The position numbers and the translations under genes were made by a program. Shown piece by piece: positions 37,278-60,763 of a stretch of 64,000 nucleotides of DNA (position 1 is the first letter of the stretch; the number at the start of each line of letters is the position of its first letter). This stretch comes from Oopsacas minuta (taxonomy: Eukaryota; Animalia; Porifera), in assembly GCA_024704765.1 (NCBI GenBank), contig JAKMXF010000355.1:6459-70458 (forward strand), in the 5' to 3' direction. The notes below the pieces were generated by a model that was given only the letters and a program-made list of their open reading frames with translations, did not search any database and had not been told where the DNA came from.

Positions 37278-37616
37278 CTATGTAGGTGATTGCAAATCAA
37301 TTCTTTCTTTCGCCCTAAAGACTTTGGACTGAATATAAAACGATCCACCATTACGTTTATCATTGGCATTAAATAAATATTGATAATTCCTCTCAACTTC
37401 CTTTGGGTCAAATGATTTGAGGTTCAAAATTTGTTTGGATTCTTCAAGTGTCATTCCAGATAGAATATCAGAGGATACTTTGTTTGATATTCCTCCTCCT
37501 CCAACATGATTGTTTCCATTATCAAAAGCGGAAGGTTGGTTTCTTATAGCTTGAGAGAGAGCCCTAGAAAAGATAGATACACCATACAAAATTAGACGAC
37601 CAAGATTCTTAGCCAT
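37278..37616 (-). CDS. PAM16: Mitochondrial import motor subunit PAM16/TIM16 (Magmas), single exon, 112 aa
   Basis: [20 protein letters not shown]-terminus and J-like domain [12 protein letters not shown]...[31 protein letters not shown]. Confidence 0.95.
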
Positions 37617-38893
37617 CGAAATAGATTCAAAAATGTTGCTCTAACTCATTTAAGATTAAGGAAAAAAGAGAATAAAGCCTACATACATACATACATACAA
37701 TCGTTCTACACTCATGGGTATGACTACATGAAGTATACAGTGGCGGCGGAATCATTTCGAAGTAGGTATGAGCAATTCTCATTTAGGCCAAAATATTACT
37801 TTCAACTACAGTGTAATTTACATGATTTCTTGAACATACATAATTAACGGAAGGGAACAGTACTGTTCTGTAATTTGTTGATAGCTAAATTACGAAAGGA
37901 ACGGAACGATTGGTAGTTGAATTACACTCTAGGACCCTAGGGTCCTAGATATAATTTTCCTACATAGTATACCCCAAATCTAGGTTTAGTACTATTGTCC
38001 ACTTGGTAGAAAACAAGAGGAGTTCCAAAGAGACATCAAATGATTCGAATCAATTTAAAAGATTATAAATTAAGTCAATAACCTGAATTTACAGGTAGAA
38101 TCCAATGTTAATACAATATGAGGTCAAATAGTATAGCTGTAAAATTGATTAAACTAAAGCCAAAGGTGATCTTTGATTTGTGGCCAGTGGAGCGGAGCCT
38201 AATTTTTAAAGTGACCGTAGATTTAAAAGTTTGAGCACCCCTGTACTAAGACAACCAATTTAAAACGGAGCCACTATACTATAAAATTGGAGTAATCAGC
38301 ACAGTAAAACAATTATTAGACAGTCAGATAAGCGTTATACAGATTATATATAAATCTGCCACTCCACCAGAAGAGTTGTGCCTCAAAATGGGTAATCGGA
38401 CACTTCGTCTGCGGACATTTCGTCCACGGATATTTCGTATAGGACAATTCGTATAGCGACATTTCATATAATAGACATATCGTATAGTGGACAATTAGTC
38501 CAAATATTGTATATTACATGCTTACTAAAAAATTGGGTAAACGGACAATTCGTCGCATGGACAATTCGTCACTTTTATGACTTCGCTATTTAGTCTTTGT
38601 TTCATAAGAAGTGTTGATTGAGGTTGTGAGAAGTAAATTGTTTATATCCCACTCTTGAAGTTTGGAATTTGCAGCTGATTGGTATGTTGTCTATTGTAAC
38701 ATGATCAAAATAGTATAAAAATCAGTCAAAAATGGGGATTTAAAAAGTCTTAATACTACCAAGAAACTATGGCTACTTTCCTAACTTCTTCGTTTTCGAT
38801 TGAGAGGATTCCGAGTGAAAGAAATAAGGATAAACCAAGCATTCAAGGTTTTATTCATACTTTGAATAGAAAATCTCACGATAGCGAATACTG

Positions 38894-41867
38894 CACAGTG
38901 GGCTTTTTGCTGGAAATAGCATGAAATTTTTACCCCCTCAGAATTGTATTTCCTTATTATCATTGAATTCACAATCCTTTCAAACCTAGAAATTAGTAAT
39001 TTCATTCTGATTCAACAAGTAAATTGGTTGTTATGGTGATGAATATTTGCGGCTTCTTGTAATTGGAATTTCTGTGTGGTATATCAAAATCGATCAAGTT
39101 TCATAGTTATATTTTTAGCACTTGTAACTAAGAAGAAAGAATTCCTTTACAATAATGAAACATTTATATTTCAATTATCTAATTTACATCTTGAAATGTC
39201 GTTTGGTTTCTAACTTTCTATTCTAAAACTAGATAAAACGCGATGACTATTTAGGACATTTTTTTTCGGCGTCCACAGGATATTTTATGCTGAAACTTGT
39301 TGTGGCGTTTCGTTGCGTGAACTCTCACTGGTCTTAAAATGTAGGTTGTAATAATAAATTCAAAAAATATAATAGTTTAGACCCGCCGGAGGGCGCCCAA
39401 AGTATCAAGCATTCATTTGAATGGGTGTAACTTTAATGTAAAATTTCCCTATGAAATATTAGCATTATGAATAACAAGGAAGCTTTTGACTTTCTATCCT
39501 CACGTAAATCTGTCAGAGATGCAACAATCGTATTTATGGATAGTCAGCAACTTGATGATAAATATTATAGTTGTATCCGATACAAATTCGTTGAGTTGAA
39601 GGGTGATAGAGAGATATTTCGTAAAAGAAACGACCTAAATACATGGGATGATATGATATTCTTTGACAATTCAACATTGGCAGAGAAGAGGCGGTTATCG
39701 TCTGAAGGTGATATTTGTACTCCTAATCATGTTCATGCAAAGGCTATCAGGAAACCACTCCTAGAATTAACGATTAAAGGACAAAGGGTACGTCTGGAAC
39801 CTCTTTTAGCCCTGATTAAAAGCTTAGCAGCTAGTGAGAACGTGGATAGCAAAACGATGGCAGCCATGGCTCTGCAATTTGTCTCATCTTCTTCAGGAGA
39901 TTACTCCACCAGTTCCTTCTGTCTGGAAATAGTCAGCAAAGGCACATTTCAAGGCAATATAAAGACACACATCTCAATTGCTAAGTCTACGTTCCTCCTA
40001 GGGCAACTGGAAATAGGTAAGCAAAAGTACATTGAATTGAGGAGACTTTGTAAGTCAGACAATGTACTATTCCCTAAGTATGAGCTAATTTCCCAGTATC
40101 GAGCAGATATTACTCTGGAGAAGGAATTCATTTTTATCCGCAATGTGTCTGATGCGCCTATGGGAGTAGGGATATCTTACATCTCTATCATCAAACAGAC
40201 AATTTCCCGCCTACTCGAATCACTTCCCACAGATTCTGAATTTGAATTCCCGTTGACATTTTCTGCAACAGATGGCTTGGATGGATCTGGATCCCATCAA
40301 GTTTATAATCAGATTCAAGAGTCACCAGATATTGGTTCCAAAAATTTCATTCTCTTTGCTTTCAAACATCTCGCTATCCACGACAGCGCAAACAAACTTA
40401 TTTGGGAAAACGAAAGGCCCAACTCACAATTTCAGATTCGCCCAGTCACTTTACTAGCTGCCAAAGAAAATAGCGAAAATGTACGTCATCTAATGGATAC
40501 TTATATCAATCCTTACGTAGCAGACATGGAAGAAAATGGGATACCACTCTCGCAAGGACTTGTGAGGATAAAACTGCTCAGGACCATGTTCGATGGAAAA
40601 ATGGCAGGAATTCTATCTGGAGCCGGTGGTGCTCACTGCCAACTCTGTACTGCGACTTTCAAACAACTGCATGATGTCGAACTTATACGAGATGGTTTTC
40701 CTATTAATCGTTCAATAACATCGGCTAAAGAACTGTTTCAAAGCGTGAATGAAGTAGAATTTCTATCTCTAAGTTCCAATGACCGTCTTGGATTGACTCA
40801 CCAACCTATTTCCGACATCGATATAATTTGCTCTTCTCCATTACATTCATATTTGTGCATCTTCAGATGATTTATGACCCTCGTTTATCATCTGCAATCA
40901 GGTGCAAGGAAGTGGTCACCATCATCCTTAGGGATAAAAAACTTAATGAAGTTTGTTTCAGGCTTATTGATGGAAAAGACTGGTATGAAGATTGATCAAC
41001 CCAGCAGTGATGGTGGCACTACATCAACTGGCAATGTTGCTCGAAATTGTTTCTTGGACAAAAACCAATTTCTTTACTGGGTTTGTTCCTTGATACCAAC
41101 AGAATACCATGAAAATATAAAGGTCATCCACACTAACCTTTCAGTATGTTTGCGTATTTACAACAGCGACCGAGAGATAACACTGAAAGACTGGATATTC
41201 TTTGCAAGGACACATACGAATACATTGTAATCAGGTTCCCTTGGGCAAACATCAGTCCAACCTTGCATAAATTACTAGCCCATTCTTCAGAACTCATTAG
41301 AACTTGTAACAATAGCCATGGACTTAAAGTCTTCTCTGAAGAAGCAGTTGAAGTTTCAAACAAACTCGTCCGAAGGTATCGCGAACACCTTGCCAGAAAA
41401 ATGTCGTTTTCTCTGAATACTCGAGATATCTTTATACGACTGATGTGTAATAGTGATCCTGTCCTCAATATGTATAGAAAATTTACAAAAGCAAGCAAGA
41501 AAACCCACTCTTCTGAACCTCGAGACCAAGAAATTCTTTTCTCACAATTAACTTGCTAATAAATAATGATTGAAATAGATGGAAGCACAAGATACAATTT
41601 AAATGTGGGTATGTTAAATGTGTGTCTATGATCCAAAATAAGCTTTCTATCGCCTCTAGCAACTGAATTTTAAGCTCAAAAACTATAATTTATGATAATA
41701 TGAAAGGTGTCAATGACGTCATAACTTTTTAATGAGATGACCTAGATTTTTTTTATGCAGAAATCGTTTTCTCAGGGGTAATTTCCTATTGGCTAATAAT
41801 GCATTATATATCTCTATCTTGCATGGTTTTCCTATTTCCATTTCACCCCCCAAAAATGCCCACTGTG
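38894..41867 (+). mobile_element. RAG1-like/Transib transposon A, complete ends, 5-bp TSD
   Basis: CACAGTG at 38894-38900 and CACTGTG at 41861-41867; TSD TACTG at 38889-38893 and 41868-41872; removing the element restores the host MULE reading frame. Confidence 0.96.
39467..41559 (+). pseudogene. RAG1-like/Transib transposase A (~695 aa); one nonsense codon (40868-40870) and one frameshift (~41175)
   Basis: GLDGSG (catalytic D), MFDGK (second D), CQLC and HKLLAH (Zn ligands), SEEAVEVSNKLVRR (catalytic E), GNVAR, IFIRL...SDP; NBD-like segment at aa ~94-136. Confidence 0.93.
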
Positions 41868-44632
41868 TACTGGGTGTGTGAAAAGCGCGGAATCTGCAAG
41901 CGAGGCTACACACAAGTAATAATCAAGTAATCAAACCTACAGATCCTTCAATAATACCAAGTGAGCATTCGCATAGTTCTGATATAACTCGGGGTGAGAT
42001 GCTAAGAGGGCATACGAACCTCAAGGAATCGCTCGAAATTCTGGATCAAGTACCCGAAATCTCCTTGCAACTTCAGTAGAAGGAATGACAGCAGAATCCA
42101 TTAACAAATTACCAACGCTTGACTCTGTTAAGAGAAATATTAGGAAGTGTAAGAGAAGAGAAGAAGAATTTTATGGAAATCCAAGTTCTTGCGCTGAAAT
42201 AATAATTCCAGAAGATTTAAATTTACACTTAATGGTGAGAGCTTCCCATTATTTGATTCAGGAGAAGGTGATGATCACAGAATGATTCTCTTTGGAACTT
42301 CAAAGTTTTTATCTATACTTAAAGAAAGTACCAACTGGTACAGTGATGGCACATTTAAAGTTGTTCCAGAACATTTCTTCCAACTTTACACTATCCATGC
42401 ACAAAGAGATGGATATATATTCCCTTGCGTTTATGCTTTATTTCAGACTAACACTGAAGAGACCTATAAAAGAATGCTCTCTTAACTGCTCCAACTAGAG
42501 TCCGAATTAAATCCTACATCCATAATGGTGGATTTCGAAAAGGCCGCGATAAATGCATTGGAAAATACTTTCCTTGCATGTGTCTATGGATGTTTCTTCC
42601 ATTTAAAATACAGCATTTATCGGAGAATTCAAGCTAATGGATTAGCTACGTTGTATCAACAAGATAGGGATTTAGCTTTGGAGCTGATGATGTTGCCCTG
42701 CCTGGCTTTCGTGCATGAGATAGATGTTATAGATTGTTTTAACATCTTGATGCATGAATATCCTCAATCTGGGAAGACAGTTGCAAAATATTTTGAAGAC
42801 AACTATATTGGAAAACAGCTACCAAATTGTTCTCGTAGGAACCACCTTTTCCTATCAGAGTGTGGAACATGCATCAAAGAGTGATGGATCGAATCCCTCG
42901 AACAAATGATAGCGTTGAAGGTTGACATAATGCTTTTAGTCATGGTATTGGTCATCCACACCCAGATTTCGTAAAACTCTTAAGATTTTGCAAAAAGAGC
43001 AATCACTTCAAGAGGCAATTTATGCAAAGTGGGAAGGACGAAATCTGAAGCAGCGGTCAAAATCGAATATGGAACGTGAAGAAAGGATATATACCATAGT
43101 TATCAAATATGATAATCGCGAAATCATCGAATATCTTCAAGGGATAGCATATAATTTTGAATTTAGTTATTTAAATCAAATACTAAGTATCATTTCCATT
43201 TATTGCTTACTATCTTAATTTCTTTCCTTTTCCACGCGACGAGTCCACGAGACGAGTTGTCCGCGACGAATTATCCGTCGACGAATTGTCCATGCAACGA
43301 ATTGTCCGCAATTCAAAAAATTGATGTATTATCGTAGTTTAATAATTGAAAGTAGGATAATAGAATATGTAATTTAGAATGAATACAATGGAATAGTTTA
43401 GAAGTTAAAATTATATGCGATCCCTTTTAGGAAGGTTTTTGGTTCTCCATTTCCAAAATCTGAAACGATTGTTATGAGACGCTTAGCATAATGGATTTCT
43501 ATTTGGTCTTAGTTGTGCACATCCCAGTTTCACAAAATTAATTCGTCATTTACAGGTGGAACAATCTCTACAAGAAGCGGTGGTAACGAAATGGGAATCT
43601 GTGGAGGCTATCATTTAATCTAAACAAAGTATTTCCAGAAACGCATCAATAAGTCAAAATAACGAATAACTTGGGATTCGGGAATAAAGACCAAGATCGG
43701 TAACATTTTCATATGGAGAGAAAAATCAGCGTTTTCAATGTACAGACTTGCAAAGCCTGCTGACTGTATCTTCCGATAGATGTTTTGCGACAAGTGAAAA
43801 ACATCCTATTAAACACTTAAGAATTTTGATTCTAATGCATTGATAGCCGTTCTCAAAATCAGCCATGACAAAGAATGGATTCAACTCAGGACGTTATCAA
43901 GAAACTGAGTGAAAAGTGTCGTATATATTGACTCACTCTTGTTAGTCAACAGTGCGTAGACATATGGAATTATCATACCGCCCTTCTGCGCGTGAATTGT
44001 GTACAGTTGAATAATTGTTCTGGGACAACTTTGAAAGTACCGTCCACATACCAACTCTGAGATTCTCACAGTAATGATAACATTTTGGGAGCACAAAATA
44101 TAAGAATTCAATTCGAATCTTCGATCCCAGAGTCATGTATTAGAAACCTTTCTACCATTAATTAAAATCTGTATCTCTCAGGTATTCGTAATTCAATGGC
44201 AGAATCATGGTTGATGACATTCTCTTCTACTAAACTCTTATGGCGGCGTACTGTACGTTTTACTGAACTTAGAGTAGTCAATGCAACTATACTTGACTCG
44301 TTTAATCCAACAAGGCCTTGTGTCAAAATAGTATTAGTTTTCTCCCCAGCTAAAGCACGGTCTTTCATCAATTGATAACCCCGTAACATTTCAGAGCGAG
44401 CTGGATTAGGTCCATGGGTGTGACTACTGAATATTTCAGTAAATAACGTAGGTATTGATATTGCTCCATCTGGAGATGTAGGCAATCAAGCCTTACAATT
44501 CCACGCTGCTCGCACAGTCAATATTGATTACCTGCTAAACTTACACCATTGAGAATATACAAAAATCCTTTTATATGAGCTTTATTTCTTTCTTTGGTTG
44601 ACTTGATAAGTTCAATAGTAAGTGTAGTTGTC

Positions 44633-53011: not shown

Positions 53012-56000
53012 CATAGTGGCACACCCCCTGGGAATTGGTCAAAATTTCAATCCGATATTTAGTTACCATTTAAAGTTCATTGGAAAGAGAAATATCCAAT
53101 TACTTGAAATATCTAAATTTGTTATGATCCATCATTTAGTTTAGCAACAACTGGAATGTATATAAGCATTACAATTTCTTGCTCAGAAATTATTCTTGTA
53201 AACCACAGATATTCATCTATATCAATGAACTTAAACTCCAGTATCTAAGCAACTAATACATTCCAAAGACTTCATTCCATTGCATTTTCGACTACTCCCT
53301 TATTATAGTGATTATATAAGCGGAGTTCAAATAATGAATCCTTAAAATAGCTCAAATATTTTGAGAAATTTTTCTGTTAGATATTTCTGTCGTCACTCAA
53401 CTTCGAAGTCTCATAACTTCATCTGTCGCGTTCTGTCAAGTTGTGTCATGAGTTTTATAAGACAGCATTTTTAATTCTTTATAAAATACAACAATTTCCA
53501 GGTTCCCTAAAATTCGCGCAAATATAGTTTCAATCACATTAACTTTTGAATTTATCTAATATTTTTAAAAATTATCTTTTCAAAATTTATATAAATATTA
53601 TGGTTGCTTAGCGATATAATCAAAACGTGAAGTTATTTACATTTTTATGCTTGTGTTTACAAAATTCAGCTTGTAATTAATATAAATAAATGTTCTCATC
53701 ACGTATTTTTACAAAGATTCCATTAAAAATCAACAGTCTTCTACTGTGAGAAAAAGTTTCGTCAAAAGTTCCTTAATTCTTAGATTTCAGAATGTATTTT
53801 ATAAGCTCATAAAACAAACATGCATATATAATTATAATCTTACTTTTTGCCCTGTATTTACAATATTGTTAATAAATAATATATTAATTATCTAGAAAAT
53901 GAACAACCTTCAAGCTTTTCAGTTTTATTGTGAGCATAAATTACTTAGCACCCGTTCAATCGCAGACCAATTTATTTCAACTCATGGTTTTGATCGAGAT
54001 CAGCAAAATTTCTTTAGTCTGAAGTTCAATGATATTCAAAAAGAGAGAGCCTCTTTTCATAAATATTCGGGCCTTGATACTTGGAATTCCATGTGCTTCT
54101 GTCCTCTGCCAAAGAAGCCTAGGTTAAGTGCCTCTTCTTCATTAACCATTAACTTTGAAGAGACTTTAATCTTTCAAAAAGATATCGCTCGCTGACTTAA
54201 CCACCAAAGGTTTGAGAAATCGGCTCTCTTCTCTTAAGTCTCACCTCGAATCAGTCGCTGAAAACGAGCATGTATCTCCAAAGACTCTTGCAACTTATCT
54301 CTTACTACTTTGTTGCAATGAGGAGCAGGACATGAATAGTGCCAATATTTGTAAAGAGATACTCGAGAAGGGAAACTCATCTTCTATCTATCCACAATTA
54401 TCACTTGATAAATCTGCCTTTCTTTTCGATTCGCTTGAGATCGGTAAAACAAAGTATTTAGAACTTCGGTGTACGTTACTATCTGAAGATCTCAAGTTAC
54501 CAGGCTACAATAGTCTAGCTAGACATCGGGCTCAAATTAATTTGCTGGATGAGGTGCGTATAATTCATAGAGAATTTCCATGTGGAGTAGGTATTTCTTA
54601 CACCAGACTACTCACCCATACAGTTGAACGAATTGTATCTAACTTAAGTCCTGATAACCTTGTCTATCCGCTGAAAGTTCGAGTATCCGATGGCTTAGAT
54701 GGCTCTGGGCGTCATCGAGTTTACCAGCAAGCTATATCTAACCCTGACCTCTCGACTAAAACCTTCATTTTATTTGGTTTCAAGGTTAATGCAATCATAA
54801 ATGCAAATGATCATATCCTATGGAAACCTCATCATCCAGATTCGCCATTTTGCACTCGACCAGTTGCCCTCTTAGCCCTTCCAGAAAATGAAGAGAGTGT
54901 CAAGTTTTTGATGGACTCATTAATAAATAACGAAACTTCAACTATTGAAGAGAGTGGTTTGTGTTTACACATGGAAATACAGAGGTCAAGATCATATGAT
55001 CTCATTTCGATACAAAGATGGCAAAAATGTTAAGCGGTGCTGGTGGTGCTAATTGTCAAATGTGTACTGCTACGTTCCAACAGATACACGATATTAGCAT
55101 AGTTCAAAATGGCTTTCCCATAAATAGAACTATCCGTGATGCACGTGATGTATTTGATGAGGTTGATGAAGAAGAATTTTTGTCTTTGCCAACAAATCAA
55201 AGGTTCAATTTAACACACAAACCGATCTCAGAAAAAGATATCATATCAGCTTCTCCTCTACATGCATATTTGAGAACATTTAGTTGGTTCCTATTATTGA
55301 TTTGCCATTTACAGTGTGGTGCTATTCAAAAATGGTCACCAACTTCGCCAATAATTCTTGGGGCCAAGAAATTTATTACTAGCCTTATTGAAGAAAAACT
55401 TAATATATCAATTGACACACCATCAGTCCAAGGAGGAACCACCACAACCGGAAATGTTGTTCGGAGATGCTTCACACGTAGCGATGATACTGTGCAAGAT
55501 TTTCTCTATTGGGTATTGACGGTTGTTCCTCAAGAGACACATCAAGTTGCCACTACAATCTTTATTAATTGAGTGCTATACTGAGATTGTATAATAGCAA
55601 CAGGAAAGTGGATACTGAAGGCCTTGATAATGTATGCCGAGAGACTTACGAATCTATTTTAACCAATTTTTCATGGGCACATGTAACCCCTACTTTACAT
55701 AAACTTCTAGCCCATGCACCACAAATAATTGCAGATCATAACGATGGGTTTGGCTTAGAAGATTTGTCTGAGGAAGGCCTTGAATCTTGTAATAAATTGG
55801 TCAGGCGATACCCTGAGAGACTCTCAAGAAAATTTAGCTTTGAGGACAACGTTAAAGATGTGTTCGTCAGGCTTATCTCTCAAAGTGATCCAATATTAGC
55901 ATCATTTCGTAATATTACCAAAAACGATTCGGAGCCAGATCTATCTGAGTTAAAGAGCTGTCAAGATATTTTGGTGAATTCTCTAATTATAAATACGTTA

Positions 56001-56288
56001 TAGTTTGTAGTTCAATGTACATTAAATAGTGTTAATAATATCAAAACATAAAACATTCAATTTCTGAACCTATAGCTCACAAATTGGCTTAATTAAAATC
56101 GATAAAAATATCAAAATATTTTTGAATGTGACAATGACATCATTACTTTCACGCCCAAAGACTTAGAAAAATCTAGTTACGTCAATCGATTCCTTGGGTA
56201 CGATTCCCCATATGTCAATAATATAGTTTAATACTTTATCTAGTACCCTAATACCTACTTCCAGGTTTTAGCCATTTCGTGCCACTGT
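53012..56288 (+). mobile_element. RAG1-like/Transib transposon B
   Basis: Ends CATAGTGGCAC / ACAGTGGCAC (terminal base of right heptamer apparently lost); direct repeat CTGTA at 53007-53011 and 56289-56293. Confidence 0.85.
53899..56003 (+). pseudogene. RAG1-like/Transib transposase B (about three frameshifts and one stop)
   Basis: GLDGSG, HFDTK, CQMC, SPLHAY, GNVVRR, HKLLAH, SEEGLESCNKLVRR, DVFVRLISQSDP. Confidence 0.92.
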
Positions 56289-56293
56289 CTGTA

Positions 56294-57636: not shown

Positions 57637-59379
57637 TACTCTAAACTTCCGTTATAAGATAACATTAATTATATGGCTAAACTCACGCTATAACAAACTG
57701 ATTCACAAACCCCCTCCTGCTTGAAAGTATTGATATTCTCCGCATATATCCTAATGCTGCAGATCACGAAGTGTAACCGGGTTCCGTACCGGTCCAGAAC
57801 ATTTCGTTATAATGAGAGTTTGTTGCAGTACAAACTGATTACACTTGCTCAAGTTTATCTATAATAGACATTTAACCCCACACATTTGGTTCAGGCAAGA
57901 AATACCACCCGTAATATATTCGGTATCCAAACTTGATATTTTTGCTCTGCACTGGCTGAACATTATCGGGGTATTACAACGCAAGTGTCAACCCCATACT
58001 TACCAATATGAGTGAAGATAAAAAGCGGGACATCGTCGGATGCAGCATATTTGCATTAGACTGGACTACAAAATAGAGGGGCAATTAAGGGTTTTGTCAA
58101 GTTTTGGCTGGACATTTGCCTCATTGGCAGTCAACACATATTCGGGGCGAGAAACCGTGGTGTCTCGCCAACCAACGGAACAGTTGGCAAGTATGGTGCG
58201 CTTGAACAACTTCACACACAGGATGCAATTTAGTTGAAAGCATAATATTAAATGAAATGTTGCATTATATATTTAGTGTTGTAGACAGAATTATGTAATA
58301 ACCAGCTTTCCTTTAAAGTAACAAGAATTACCTGCAGTGAAATACACTGAATAGCAAACAAATGATCATGAAAGAGTAGGGTAACAAGCGTGTTTAACCG
58401 CAATATCAACAGTATGAGCATTCCTATGGTAATTGTAATGTATAAATCAATACAATTTGATTATAATGAGTAATACAATTTTCCCCATAGGATTTGGCTT
58501 AGGGAGTAAAATTTTCGTAACTTTGTCAAATTTAATCCGATTTTGGAGTTCTTTGCTCTATCAACTTCTCTTAACGAGTTCTTGAACGGTGCATATAGGG
58601 ATTTTTGACCACATTAAAAAAGTTCGGGGTGTAAGATTCTGCAATTGTACCTAGATTTCTCTCTCAACTATAAATTCCCAACGGCCGTCGATTCTTTCAT
58701 CCAGATATTTTGATCTTCGGATGGCGAATTCTCCTCAATTCCGAGAAGGTTTAGCAAATTGAAGTCTGAATGTAATGCTTTCAGTAAGCATAATTATCTA
58801 TCTACATATGGTAATTACTCCTGTTTTATTCTACTCAACCCCCCAGTCCAACAAAGAAATGTATTATTGGAGAAGAGCGCTACCTTCGAAAGATCATTGT
58901 GGTTTAACACACGAACCCATATCTGAGATTGACATACTACCTGCATCTCCACTACATACCTACATTTGTGTCTTTTGTTGGTTCATGCTTCTTATTTACC
59001 ACATGCGTTCAGGTACTTTTAAATAGTTGCCAACCTCTAGAGTGATAAAGGATTCAATGACATTTACCCGGGTGTTCTTATGCAAGAAAAGAGGGCTGAG
59101 AATCGATCAACAATCCAGTGATGGAGGAACAACTTCTACTGGAAATATGGCAAAACAGTGTTTCCTCAATAATAATAACTTTATTTATTGGGTGGCCACT
59201 TTGATCTCAGAAGATATTAGAGAGCCAATTAGTATTTTGCATAAGAACACAGGCCTACACTTTTTAGTTGTATTGATTTTGTCAACTGATATATACTAAT
59301 TCTGGGTTGCTGATTCCGATTATTTAGTCAGTTTCTCCCTATTACGTCAAGTTATCTCACAATCTTATTACTACATTTA

Positions 59380-60763
59380 CAGTCTGTCAACTTGAAATTG
59401 GGAAGATCTTTGTTTTTCTCTAGCTACAAGTACATTTAGTGTATTTTTATTCTAAAAGTGTTATTAGAATCCTTATACAATCAATAATATAGTAGGCCTA
59501 ATATTTTATCTTATTTCCGGTACTTTTCGTAATAATTTGACTCTTTTTGGCATCGATGACCAAAATGGACGTAAAAATTCATGTTCTAAAGAATTCCATA
59601 CTTCATTTAGCTCCCTTTCCAGCTCATTTAAATTTCGTGGTGACTTCAAATCGATTTCTCTCTTGATCCACGACCAGAGGTTCTCGATCGGATTCAAATC
59701 CGGACTACAAGCAGGCCAATCCATCCTATGTATCCCTTTCTCCTCCATGTATCCTTTAGCAAGCTTGCACGTGTGTTTGGGATCGTTGTCTTCCTGGAAA
59801 ACCCATCCATCAGGGTACAAGACACTTGCTTGTTCTACTAAACATTCGTGCAGAATGTCGCAGTAAAGTCGCTCGGTTAGATTTTCTCTGAAAACCTTGA
59901 TAAGAAACGTTCCACGTGCTGAAACGCTCCCCAAACATGCAATTTAGGAGAGTGTTTCGTACTGGGTTTTACTGGTTTCGAATCACCTTTACACCAGACA
60001 CATATATACTCTGCCACCAGCTAGCGAAATAGACATCTCATCGCTAAATATCACTTTCTCCCAATCTCTACATCTGTTAGACTTAGCCCAATCGACACGA
60101 TAAGCCTTATAGGTTTGTGTAAGCATCGGAATCTTTCTAGCAACCTTGCGGGTGAAGCCATGCCGCTTCATCTCAATCCTTACAGCCTCATGTGAGAACG
60201 ATAGACCCCACCCTTTGTTAAATTTGCAAGTCAACTTCCTCAGATAACCTAGGATTGTTGATTGCCAAACTAACAAGTGATCTAGCGTTATTTGCTTTGA
60301 TCTGACGCTGTTTCCCGGAACCAATCTTTCTATCAACGGATTCAGCATTCCTCAATTTGTAAACAGTGCGATAAACTGTACTTTTTGGAACTCCAGTTCT
60401 TCGAGATAATTCCATACAATTCGTGATTCCTGTGTCGAAAAGTATCTTGATATTGTTACGCTGTTCTTGCTCGTTCATTTTAAGGTTTTGAATTGATGAA
60501 AGTAAAGAATTATTAGCGAAGAAATAGAAGTGTCGCGAGAAATTCAAGTGATAAATATTTATATAGAATATTTGATTAGTAACTAAGTATAAATTGAAAT
60601 ATTTTGTAACCGCAGTCAGCTAGAGAAGTTCAGTTGGTTAAGAAATGACTAGAAATAGTTGAAAAACACAAATTATCAATATTATTACGATAACCAATTT
60701 GAAAATGCAATTAGGAACATTCTAAATCGAAAAAGATGTTCCCAATTTCAAGTTGACAGATTG
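59380..60763 (-). mobile_element. Tc1 (DD34E) element, full length, frameshifted
   Basis: TIRs CAGTCTGTCAACTTGAAATTGGGAA / CAATCTGTCAACTTGAAATTGGGAA with TA flanks; IFSDEM, EDNDPKH, SPDLNPIEN. Confidence 0.93.

Follow-up and report, generated by a model that had tools for sequence, protein, structure and literature searches.

Transib transposons with unequal ends were described by Kapitonov & Jurka in 2005, who reported insect families (Transib5, Transib2_AG and TransibN1-N3_AG) with 5' ends resembling the short recombination signal sequence (RSS12) and 3' ends resembling the long one (RSS23), and who wrote that Transib ends can account for the derivation of the 12/23 rule (PMC1131882). Tao et al. 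2022 found asymmetric terminal inverted repeats (TIRs) in all Subgroup I Transibs and both kinds of TIRs in Subgroup II, reported Transibs with an equivalent of the RAG1 nonamer-binding domain (NBD) and with a CCGHC-type C-terminal tail (CTT1), and left sponges unmentioned in the main text; spacers of 4/13 are given there for the pelagophyte RAG-like element AanRAGL (PMC9435367). A 10-bp end asymmetry was found in hemichordate RAGL-A of Ptychodera flava (Martin et al. 2023, PMC10462144), and HzTransib lacks most of the NBD and has TIRs with little or no nonamer similarity (PMC4840297). For the hexactinellid glass sponge Oopsacas minuta, the genome paper counts Transibs only as part of a RepeatMasker class, 'Mirage, P-element, Transib', that makes up 1.22% of the genome (PMC10280926, supplement), and our literature search returned no paper pairing Transib with Oopsacas or other sponge genera. 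Here we describe a Transib with bipartite, unequal ends in a 64-kb stretch of O. minuta DNA (the window), together with the family and the wider sponge clade to which it belongs.

Positions 38894-41867 of the window hold a complete element of 2974 bp, which we interpret as a copy, now inactivated, of a young cut-and-paste DNA transposon of the Transib superfamily, with unlike ends that would be paired with the help of an NBD-like domain. We give this explanation as a whole, including the pairing, a probability of roughly 0.8; that the element is a Transib with bipartite unequal ends is close to certain. One gene, now read in three pieces (open reading frames, ORFs, at 39467-40870, 40874-41230 and 41146-41559), forms the one long reading frame in the 2974 bp, and neither the 573-bp 5' region nor the 308-bp 3' region contains another sizeable ORF, so that a RAG2-like gene is absent. 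The lack of a second gene therefore identifies a Transib rather than a two-gene RAG-like transposon. The original prediction, made from the sequence, had called the element a complete one-gene RAG1-like transposon: completeness and the relationship to RAG1 are borne out by the single reading frame, both ends, the DDE catalytic triad and the match to HzTransib, and the name is corrected to Transib, the RAG2-less sister of RAG-like transposons. Its account of the ends, with perfect heptamers, identical 9-mers, 10-nt and 20-nt spacers, TACTG target-site duplications (TSDs) and a shared deeper box, agreed base for base with our reading (Table 1).

Independent support for the element boundaries and the 5-bp duplication came from a contig in public run X1 in which positions 38888 and 41868 are joined and the two sides have 5 letters in common, an empty site with a single TACTG. 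Since the flank is itself repeated, with raised depth in public contigs, this empty site is probably a paralogous copy of the flanking repeat. A decayed MULE-type repeat surrounds the element (41868-42500 and 38769-38893; weak Pfam MULE match at 42282-42482). Five further O. minuta genomic copies (L001-L005) match the window copy at 98-99% identity along the whole element; their ends are the same and their flanks are not, so the family moved recently. Of these copies, L004 aligns only to element base 2581, and its right end was not recovered. Perfect 5-bp TSDs flank three of the six family copies (TACTG, CCCTG, GACTA), and among the remaining copies one has flanks matching at 4/5 positions (TGGTA/TGGTC) and one is without a match. 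Together with the empty site and perfect TSDs in other families (GTCAG, CGGAA, CACCA, GGTAT), these copies substantiate the predicted 5-bp duplication. Clean heptamer ends were also seen in five elements with unmatched 5-bp flanks (L002, L006, L007, L009 and L013), even where the ORF was long or intact; exchange by recombination between copies, chimeric assembly and decay of the flanks are all candidate causes.

All six family copies are damaged, each by different lesions, and the longest ORF is 674 aa (L002). The window copy has exactly the two coding lesions that were predicted, and both are private to it: base 40870 is G in all five other copies, the A in the window creating the TGA at 40868-40870, and all five have one more A after 41178, where the window lost 1 nt. 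Public contigs agree at both positions. Naturally intact relatives exist with 712-aa ORFs, among them P0138, P0137 and P0143 of the L006 family, and L010 and L011 carry identical 719-aa ORFs between different perfect TSDs (CGGAA, CACCA), so that family has also been mobile recently. When public runs X5, X6 and X8, labelled as other organisms, were compared against window positions 38300-42400, they contained family copies 90-99% identical at high depth and only small parts of the window flanks, which may reflect either close relatives of O. minuta or horizontal spread.

Pfam barely detects the transposase, with a RAG1 match on the C-terminal piece alone that falls below or near the cut-off, so identification rested on PDB sequence and fold comparison. 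The 467-aa piece matched HzTransib (6pqn) at E 1.4e-9 in a phmmer search of PDB sequences, with mouse RAG1 weak, and a family profile built from 21 full-length relatives (alignment A2) reached 3.5e-48 against HzTransib, 1.8e-17 against the amphioxus RAG1L (BbRAG1L) and ~1e-15 against mouse RAG1. An AlphaFold model of relative P0138 (predicted local distance difference test score, pLDDT, 81) gave Z 31-33 and a root-mean-square deviation (rmsd) of ~3 Å against the RAG1 and HzTransib cores; among solved structures the closest was HzTransib of Helicoverpa zea (PDB 6pqn/6pqx), with 457 residues superposed at an rmsd of 3.0, Z 31.5 and 22-24% identity. Residues D270, D374 and E627 are invariant in the 21 sequences, align with RAG1 D600, D708 and E962, and are all present in the window copy.

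Residues 89-160 of the P0138 model match residues 389-456 of the RAG1 NBD structure 3gna (Z 6.9, 67/68 aligned, 22% identity), and in the alignment of the family profile, which starts at RAG1 residue 361, RKPLxELTxKxxRxRL is paired with GRPRQHLLSLTRRAQKHRL. This region is kept in all 21 aligned proteins. By predicted fold and profile alignment, then, the sponge transposases carry a homologue of the RAG1 NBD immediately N-terminal to the catalytic core. The match to HzTransib begins no earlier than model residue 164, so HzTransib is without ~160 N-terminal residues, which include the NBD homologue and an extra helical domain. That additional domain, P0138 residues 1-62 (equivalent to window 39467-39655), is modelled with four helices at pLDDT 94 when folded alone, contains an invariant Trp, and found no match among PDB folds at E <= 0.001; it may be what reads the subterminal boxes described below. 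A CxxCGxxGHxxxxC zinc knuckle closes the protein in many sponge Transib families (alignment A2; weak zf-CCHC Pfam match); the window family has lost it, degenerate versions remaining there and in its nearest relative. The nearest database proteins, among the matches listed, came from O. minuta or ENA assemblies, a profile search for non-sponge relatives likewise gave, among the matches listed, O. minuta and ENA proteins, and on the same matches the nine families considered below form one clade, so far with only sponge-derived data.

Because copies of the window family (L001-L005) are near-identical throughout, the agreement of their ends carries no information on constraint, and only diverged families are informative. 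Elements of such families were fetched via their proteins and their ends were located; with a second window element added, this gave nine families with transposases 38-71% identical (median 44%) (Table 2). The layout of 10 against 19/20 nt and the 9-mer nGGnAnTAG are present in 8/9 families, and an unbiased search for the best 9-mer shared between ends placed it at left offset 18 and right offset 27/28, within ranges of 16-20 and 25-30, again in 8/9. CACAGTG occurs at both ends of the window element and in 7/8 other families, the second window element having single-base variants (CATAGTG, GACAGTG). Information content is maximal in the CACAGTGG terminus (the heptamer plus G) and in nGGnAnTAG(G) and is low in the spacers, whose lengths are 10 and 19-20, not the RSS-type 12+/-1 and 23+/-1. 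The 9-mer and spacer lengths, on whose conservation among copies the original prediction had been made to depend, are thus both kept while spacer sequence drifts. The bipartite end layout is real and conserved across sponge families ~40-70% identical in transposase, with a spacer difference of about one helical turn.

Conservation extends beyond the 9-mers. The right-end 110 nt have a mean column identity of 70% across the nine families (alignment A4), with boxes AGATAGA, AAATGTATTATT..CATATAGGTTATCGA.CC and AATCGATT, and this subterminal region is far better conserved than the spacer in families ~40% identical in protein, possibly as binding sites or as mRNA 3'-end signals. Left ends share a T-run/GACC box and GAATTCA. 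The 'TTACCCC' box is the window-family version of the GACC/ATCGACC box and lies at both ends at different depths, and the right spacer contains, at about the depth of the left 9-mer, a similarity to AAATGGC too faint to be given a meaning.

The end motifs are also more frequent in the window than expected by chance. Exact TGGAAATAG occurs 4 times in the 64-kb window against 0.91 expected, a number reached in no shuffle, and a scan for the heptamer (<=1 mismatch) followed after 6-27 nt by an nGGnAnTAG-type 9-mer returned 4 sites where 0.25 were expected; the highest count in 200 shuffles was 2. All 4 coincide exactly with the termini, left and right, of the two transposase-bearing window elements, each of which has one 10-type and one 19/20-type end (n=2 only). 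No non-autonomous derivatives and no left-left or right-right end pairs were found in the window. Two ORF-internal copies of CTGGAAATAG (39923, 40007) might have been internal binding sites but are read as coding coincidence, because they are missing from other families using the same 9-mer and one copy encodes the conserved LEIG motif.

Table 1. Features of the window element and of two further Transib sequences in the window
Feature	Position	Strand	Basis or remark
TSD, left copy, TACTG	38889..38893	.	sequence reading; single TACTG in empty-site contig
Left terminal heptamer, CACAGTG	38894..38900	+	sequence reading; position 8 (G) invariant across families too
Left spacer, 10 nt, GGCTTTTTGC	38901..38910	+	length kept across families, sequence not
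Left 9-mer, TGGAAATAG	38911..38919	+	family consensus nGGnAnTAG
Left subterminal box, T-run then ACCCCCTCAGAA	38926..38943	+	T-run + (C)GACC at the same place in other families
Deeper box, left version, TTACCCCCTCAGAA	38930..38943	+	sequence reading
Transposase piece 1, 467 aa	39467..40870	+	N-terminal helical domain, NBD-like region, first two catalytic Asp (LDGSG, FDGKM); ends at private TGA 40868-40870
RAG1 NBD homologue (predicted), ~residues 91-160, AIRKPLLELTIKGQRVRL...	39737..39946	+	profile match to RAG1 361-732; P0138 model vs 3gna
Transposase piece 2	40871..41178	+	in frame with piece 1; runs to private 1-nt deletion after 41178
Transposase piece 3	41179..41559	+	shifted frame; catalytic Glu in EEAVEVSNKLVRR; weak Pfam RAG1 match; stop codon 41557-41559
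Right subterminal region	41748..41831	-	conserved across families; AGATAGA, ATGYATTATT box, TTACCCCTGAGAA box
Deeper box, right version, TTACCCCTGAGAA	41769..41781	-	sequence reading
Right 9-mer, TGGAAATAG	41832..41840	-	sequence reading
Right spacer, 20 nt, GGCATTTTTGGGGGGTGAAA	41841..41860	-	19 or 20 nt in other families
Right terminal heptamer, CACAGTG	41861..41867	-	sequence reading
TSD, right copy, TACTG	41868..41872	.	sequence reading; empty-site contig
Second Transib, older, diverged, same clade and orientation	53012..56289	+	coding region 53899-56003 broken
Third Transib fragment, central and C-terminal transposase only	58775..59300	+	sequence comparison

Table 2. Spacer length (nt) and 9-mer at each end in the nine families (win1 and win2, first and second window element)
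Family	Left spacer	Left 9-mer	Right spacer	Right 9-mer
win1	10	TGGAAATAG	20	TGGAAATAG
L006	10	TGGAAATAG	20	TGGAAATAG
L007	10	TGGAAATAG	20	TGGAAATAG
L009	10	TGGAAATAG	19	TGGAAATAG
L013	10	TGGAAATAG	19	AGGGAATAG
win2	10	TGGGAATTG	19	TGGAAGTAG
L008	10	AGGGAGTTG	19	AGGGAGTAG
L012	10	GGGTAATAG	19	AGGTAATAG
L010/L011	10	ATGCATTAG (degenerate)	19	TGGTATTGA (degenerate)

Compared with the insect Transibs (PMC1131882), the sponge elements have in common a single gene, a 5-bp TSD, CAC-type heptamers and a second block about one helical turn deeper at the 3' end; they differ in spacers (10/19-20, not 12/23), in a block of the form nGGnAnTAG (TGGAAATAG) in place of the A-rich AAAAAAATC-type nonamer, and in their hexactinellid host. 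By the published description of Subgroup I/II Transibs, the sponge clade shares asymmetric TIRs, the NBD homologue and, in many families, the CxxCGxxGHxxxxC tail; by sequence the clade is nearest HzTransib, with which it shares the core and the 5-bp TSD (Hencken 2012 and Liu 2019, cited in PMC10462144). CACAGTG, a second element at two distances ~10 bp apart, an NBD before the DDE core and the 5-bp TSD are common to the sponge elements, the 12/23 RSSs of RAG1-RAG2 and P. flava RAGL-A. Unlike those systems, the sponge elements have no RAG2/RAG2L partner and no GRPR motif, their 9-mer is not A/T-rich throughout, and their spacers are shorter.

By analogy with RAG, we propose that each subunit of a transposase dimer would use its catalytic core to engage one heptamer, with cleavage by the nick-hairpin route of Transib and RAG, and that a dimer of NBD-like domains would bind both 9-mers. 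The unequal 9-mer distances would then favour a synaptic complex of one short and one long end, as in the RAG 12/23 pair, and the further end-specific subterminal boxes would give the element a fixed polarity. In RAG itself, the NBD dimer bridges both nonamers and pivots for 12/23 RSSs (PMC10462144). Pairing of unlike ends via the NBD-like domain, which would give the one-turn/two-turn logic of the original prediction, is plausible in the sponge clade, at what we judge to be about even odds. Several points weigh against it or against the wider interpretation. Both 9-mer binding by the NBD-like domain and the preference for unlike ends are things we infer. The structural match to the NBD is modest (Z 6.9) and concerns a small helical domain; the RAG1 GRPR motif is not conserved, the family consensus being xRKP with one Arg aligned; and the RSS nonamer is A-rich where nGGnAnTAG is not. 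Right-spacer length varies between 19 and 20 among families, a tolerance of +/-1 in the geometry, and L010/L011 have the most degenerate 9-mers of the set, with the best shared word, GGTGGYAT, at a 13-nt offset. Matching TSDs were missing from 5/13 elements (L002, L006, L007, L009, L013). The sponge elements are also without RAG2, while RAG1 alone shows no 12/23 preference and RAG2 has been proposed to help establish the rule (PMC4840297).

Cut-and-paste transposons commonly have unlike ends without any pairing rule, and this favours an alternative in which each end is recognised on its own, the 9-mers are bound as accessory sites, for affinity or polarity, and the distances would serve other end-specific roles, for instance the 5' promoter and mRNA 3'-end signals. 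The ends do differ well beyond the spacer (AGATAGA and AAATGTATTATT..CATATAGGTTATCGA in the right 110 nt; T-run/GACC and GAATTCA on the left), so end-specific functions clearly exist, and such independent recognition is a serious though less probable reading. Set against it, spacers differing by 9-10 bp, roughly one helical turn, are also found in RAG 12/23, in PflRAGL-A (10 bp, PMC10462144) and in AanRAGL (4/13, PMC9435367), which points to a common geometric constraint, and the bridging of nonamers by the RAG NBD dimer (PMC10462144) speaks for joint recognition. It is less likely still that the asymmetry is an ancestral ~10-bp indel in one end, inherited by the sponge clade, with heptamer-proximal bases sufficing and the 9-mers and their spacing irrelevant to pairing. 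The nine families are one clade, among the matches listed, and common ancestry alone could give a common layout; HzTransib works with most of the NBD missing, and RAG1 by itself ignores 12/23 (PMC4840297); some slack is evident in the 19/20 variation and in the degenerate L010 9-mers. Yet spacer sequences have drifted at ~40% protein identity while the 9-mer and both spacer lengths (10 exactly; 19-20) have been held, which argues against simple inheritance because neutral sequence would gather indels and substitutions. The 9-mer is moreover inverted at the two ends, as expected of a transposase-bound site, and the NBD homologue was retained throughout the aligned proteins. That the locus is instead a RAG-like transposon (RAG1L-RAG2L, ProtoRAG-type) or a domesticated RAG1-like host gene is highly improbable: the RAG1 homology does include the NBD, and related families end in CxxCGxxGHxxxxC like the CCGHC tail of RAG1L, but there is no second gene, the profile is far closer to HzTransib than to BbRAG1L or RAG1, and the existence of multiple, TSD-flanked and decaying copies excludes a host gene.

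The second window element, at 53012-56289, has a left end of CATAGTG, 10 nt and TGGGAATTG (53012-53037) and, on the minus strand, a right end of GACAGTG, 19 nt and TGGAAGTAG (56289-56255); CTGTA would flank it on either side if one base has been lost from the right terminus. The third fragment, at 58775-59300, adjoins Tc1/mariner-type (DDE_3) remnants at 59506-60348, the region being a graveyard of transposable elements. An intact gene for Pam16, a mitochondrial import motor subunit, lies at 37278-37616 on the minus strand, 1.3 kb upstream of the complete element, showing that host genes are interspersed with the transposons here.

Asymmetric Transib TIRs, Transib NBDs and CCGHC tails have all been published before and that picture is unchanged; the novelty that the original prediction implied for asymmetric ends was overstated, as RSS12/RSS23-like Transib ends were already known (PMC1131882, PMC9435367). 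New here are the host lineage, the 10/19-20 spacing, the non-A-rich 9-mer, the strongly conserved right subterminal region and the N-terminal 62-aa domain without a PDB fold match, and with them active-looking Transibs are documented in Hexactinellida. Candidates debated for the origin of the V(D)J 12/23 rule are a refinement dependent on RAG2, descent from transposon ends and the 'Transib seed' idea. More tentatively, a RAG2-less transposase of a lineage among the earliest-branching animals might enforce one-short/one-long pairing alone, through an NBD homologue and a non-A-rich 9-mer, although we consider this doubtful. If true, a 12/23-type rule would be older than RAG2 capture and than bilaterians, and would not have been set up with RAG2's assistance. 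The sponge clade offers a compact, testable natural system for a 12/23-type rule without RAG2, combining RAG2-less transposases that carry a predicted RAG1-type NBD, spacers held at 10 and 19-20 across deep divergence, and very young copies, and the intact 712-aa relatives make direct assays feasible.

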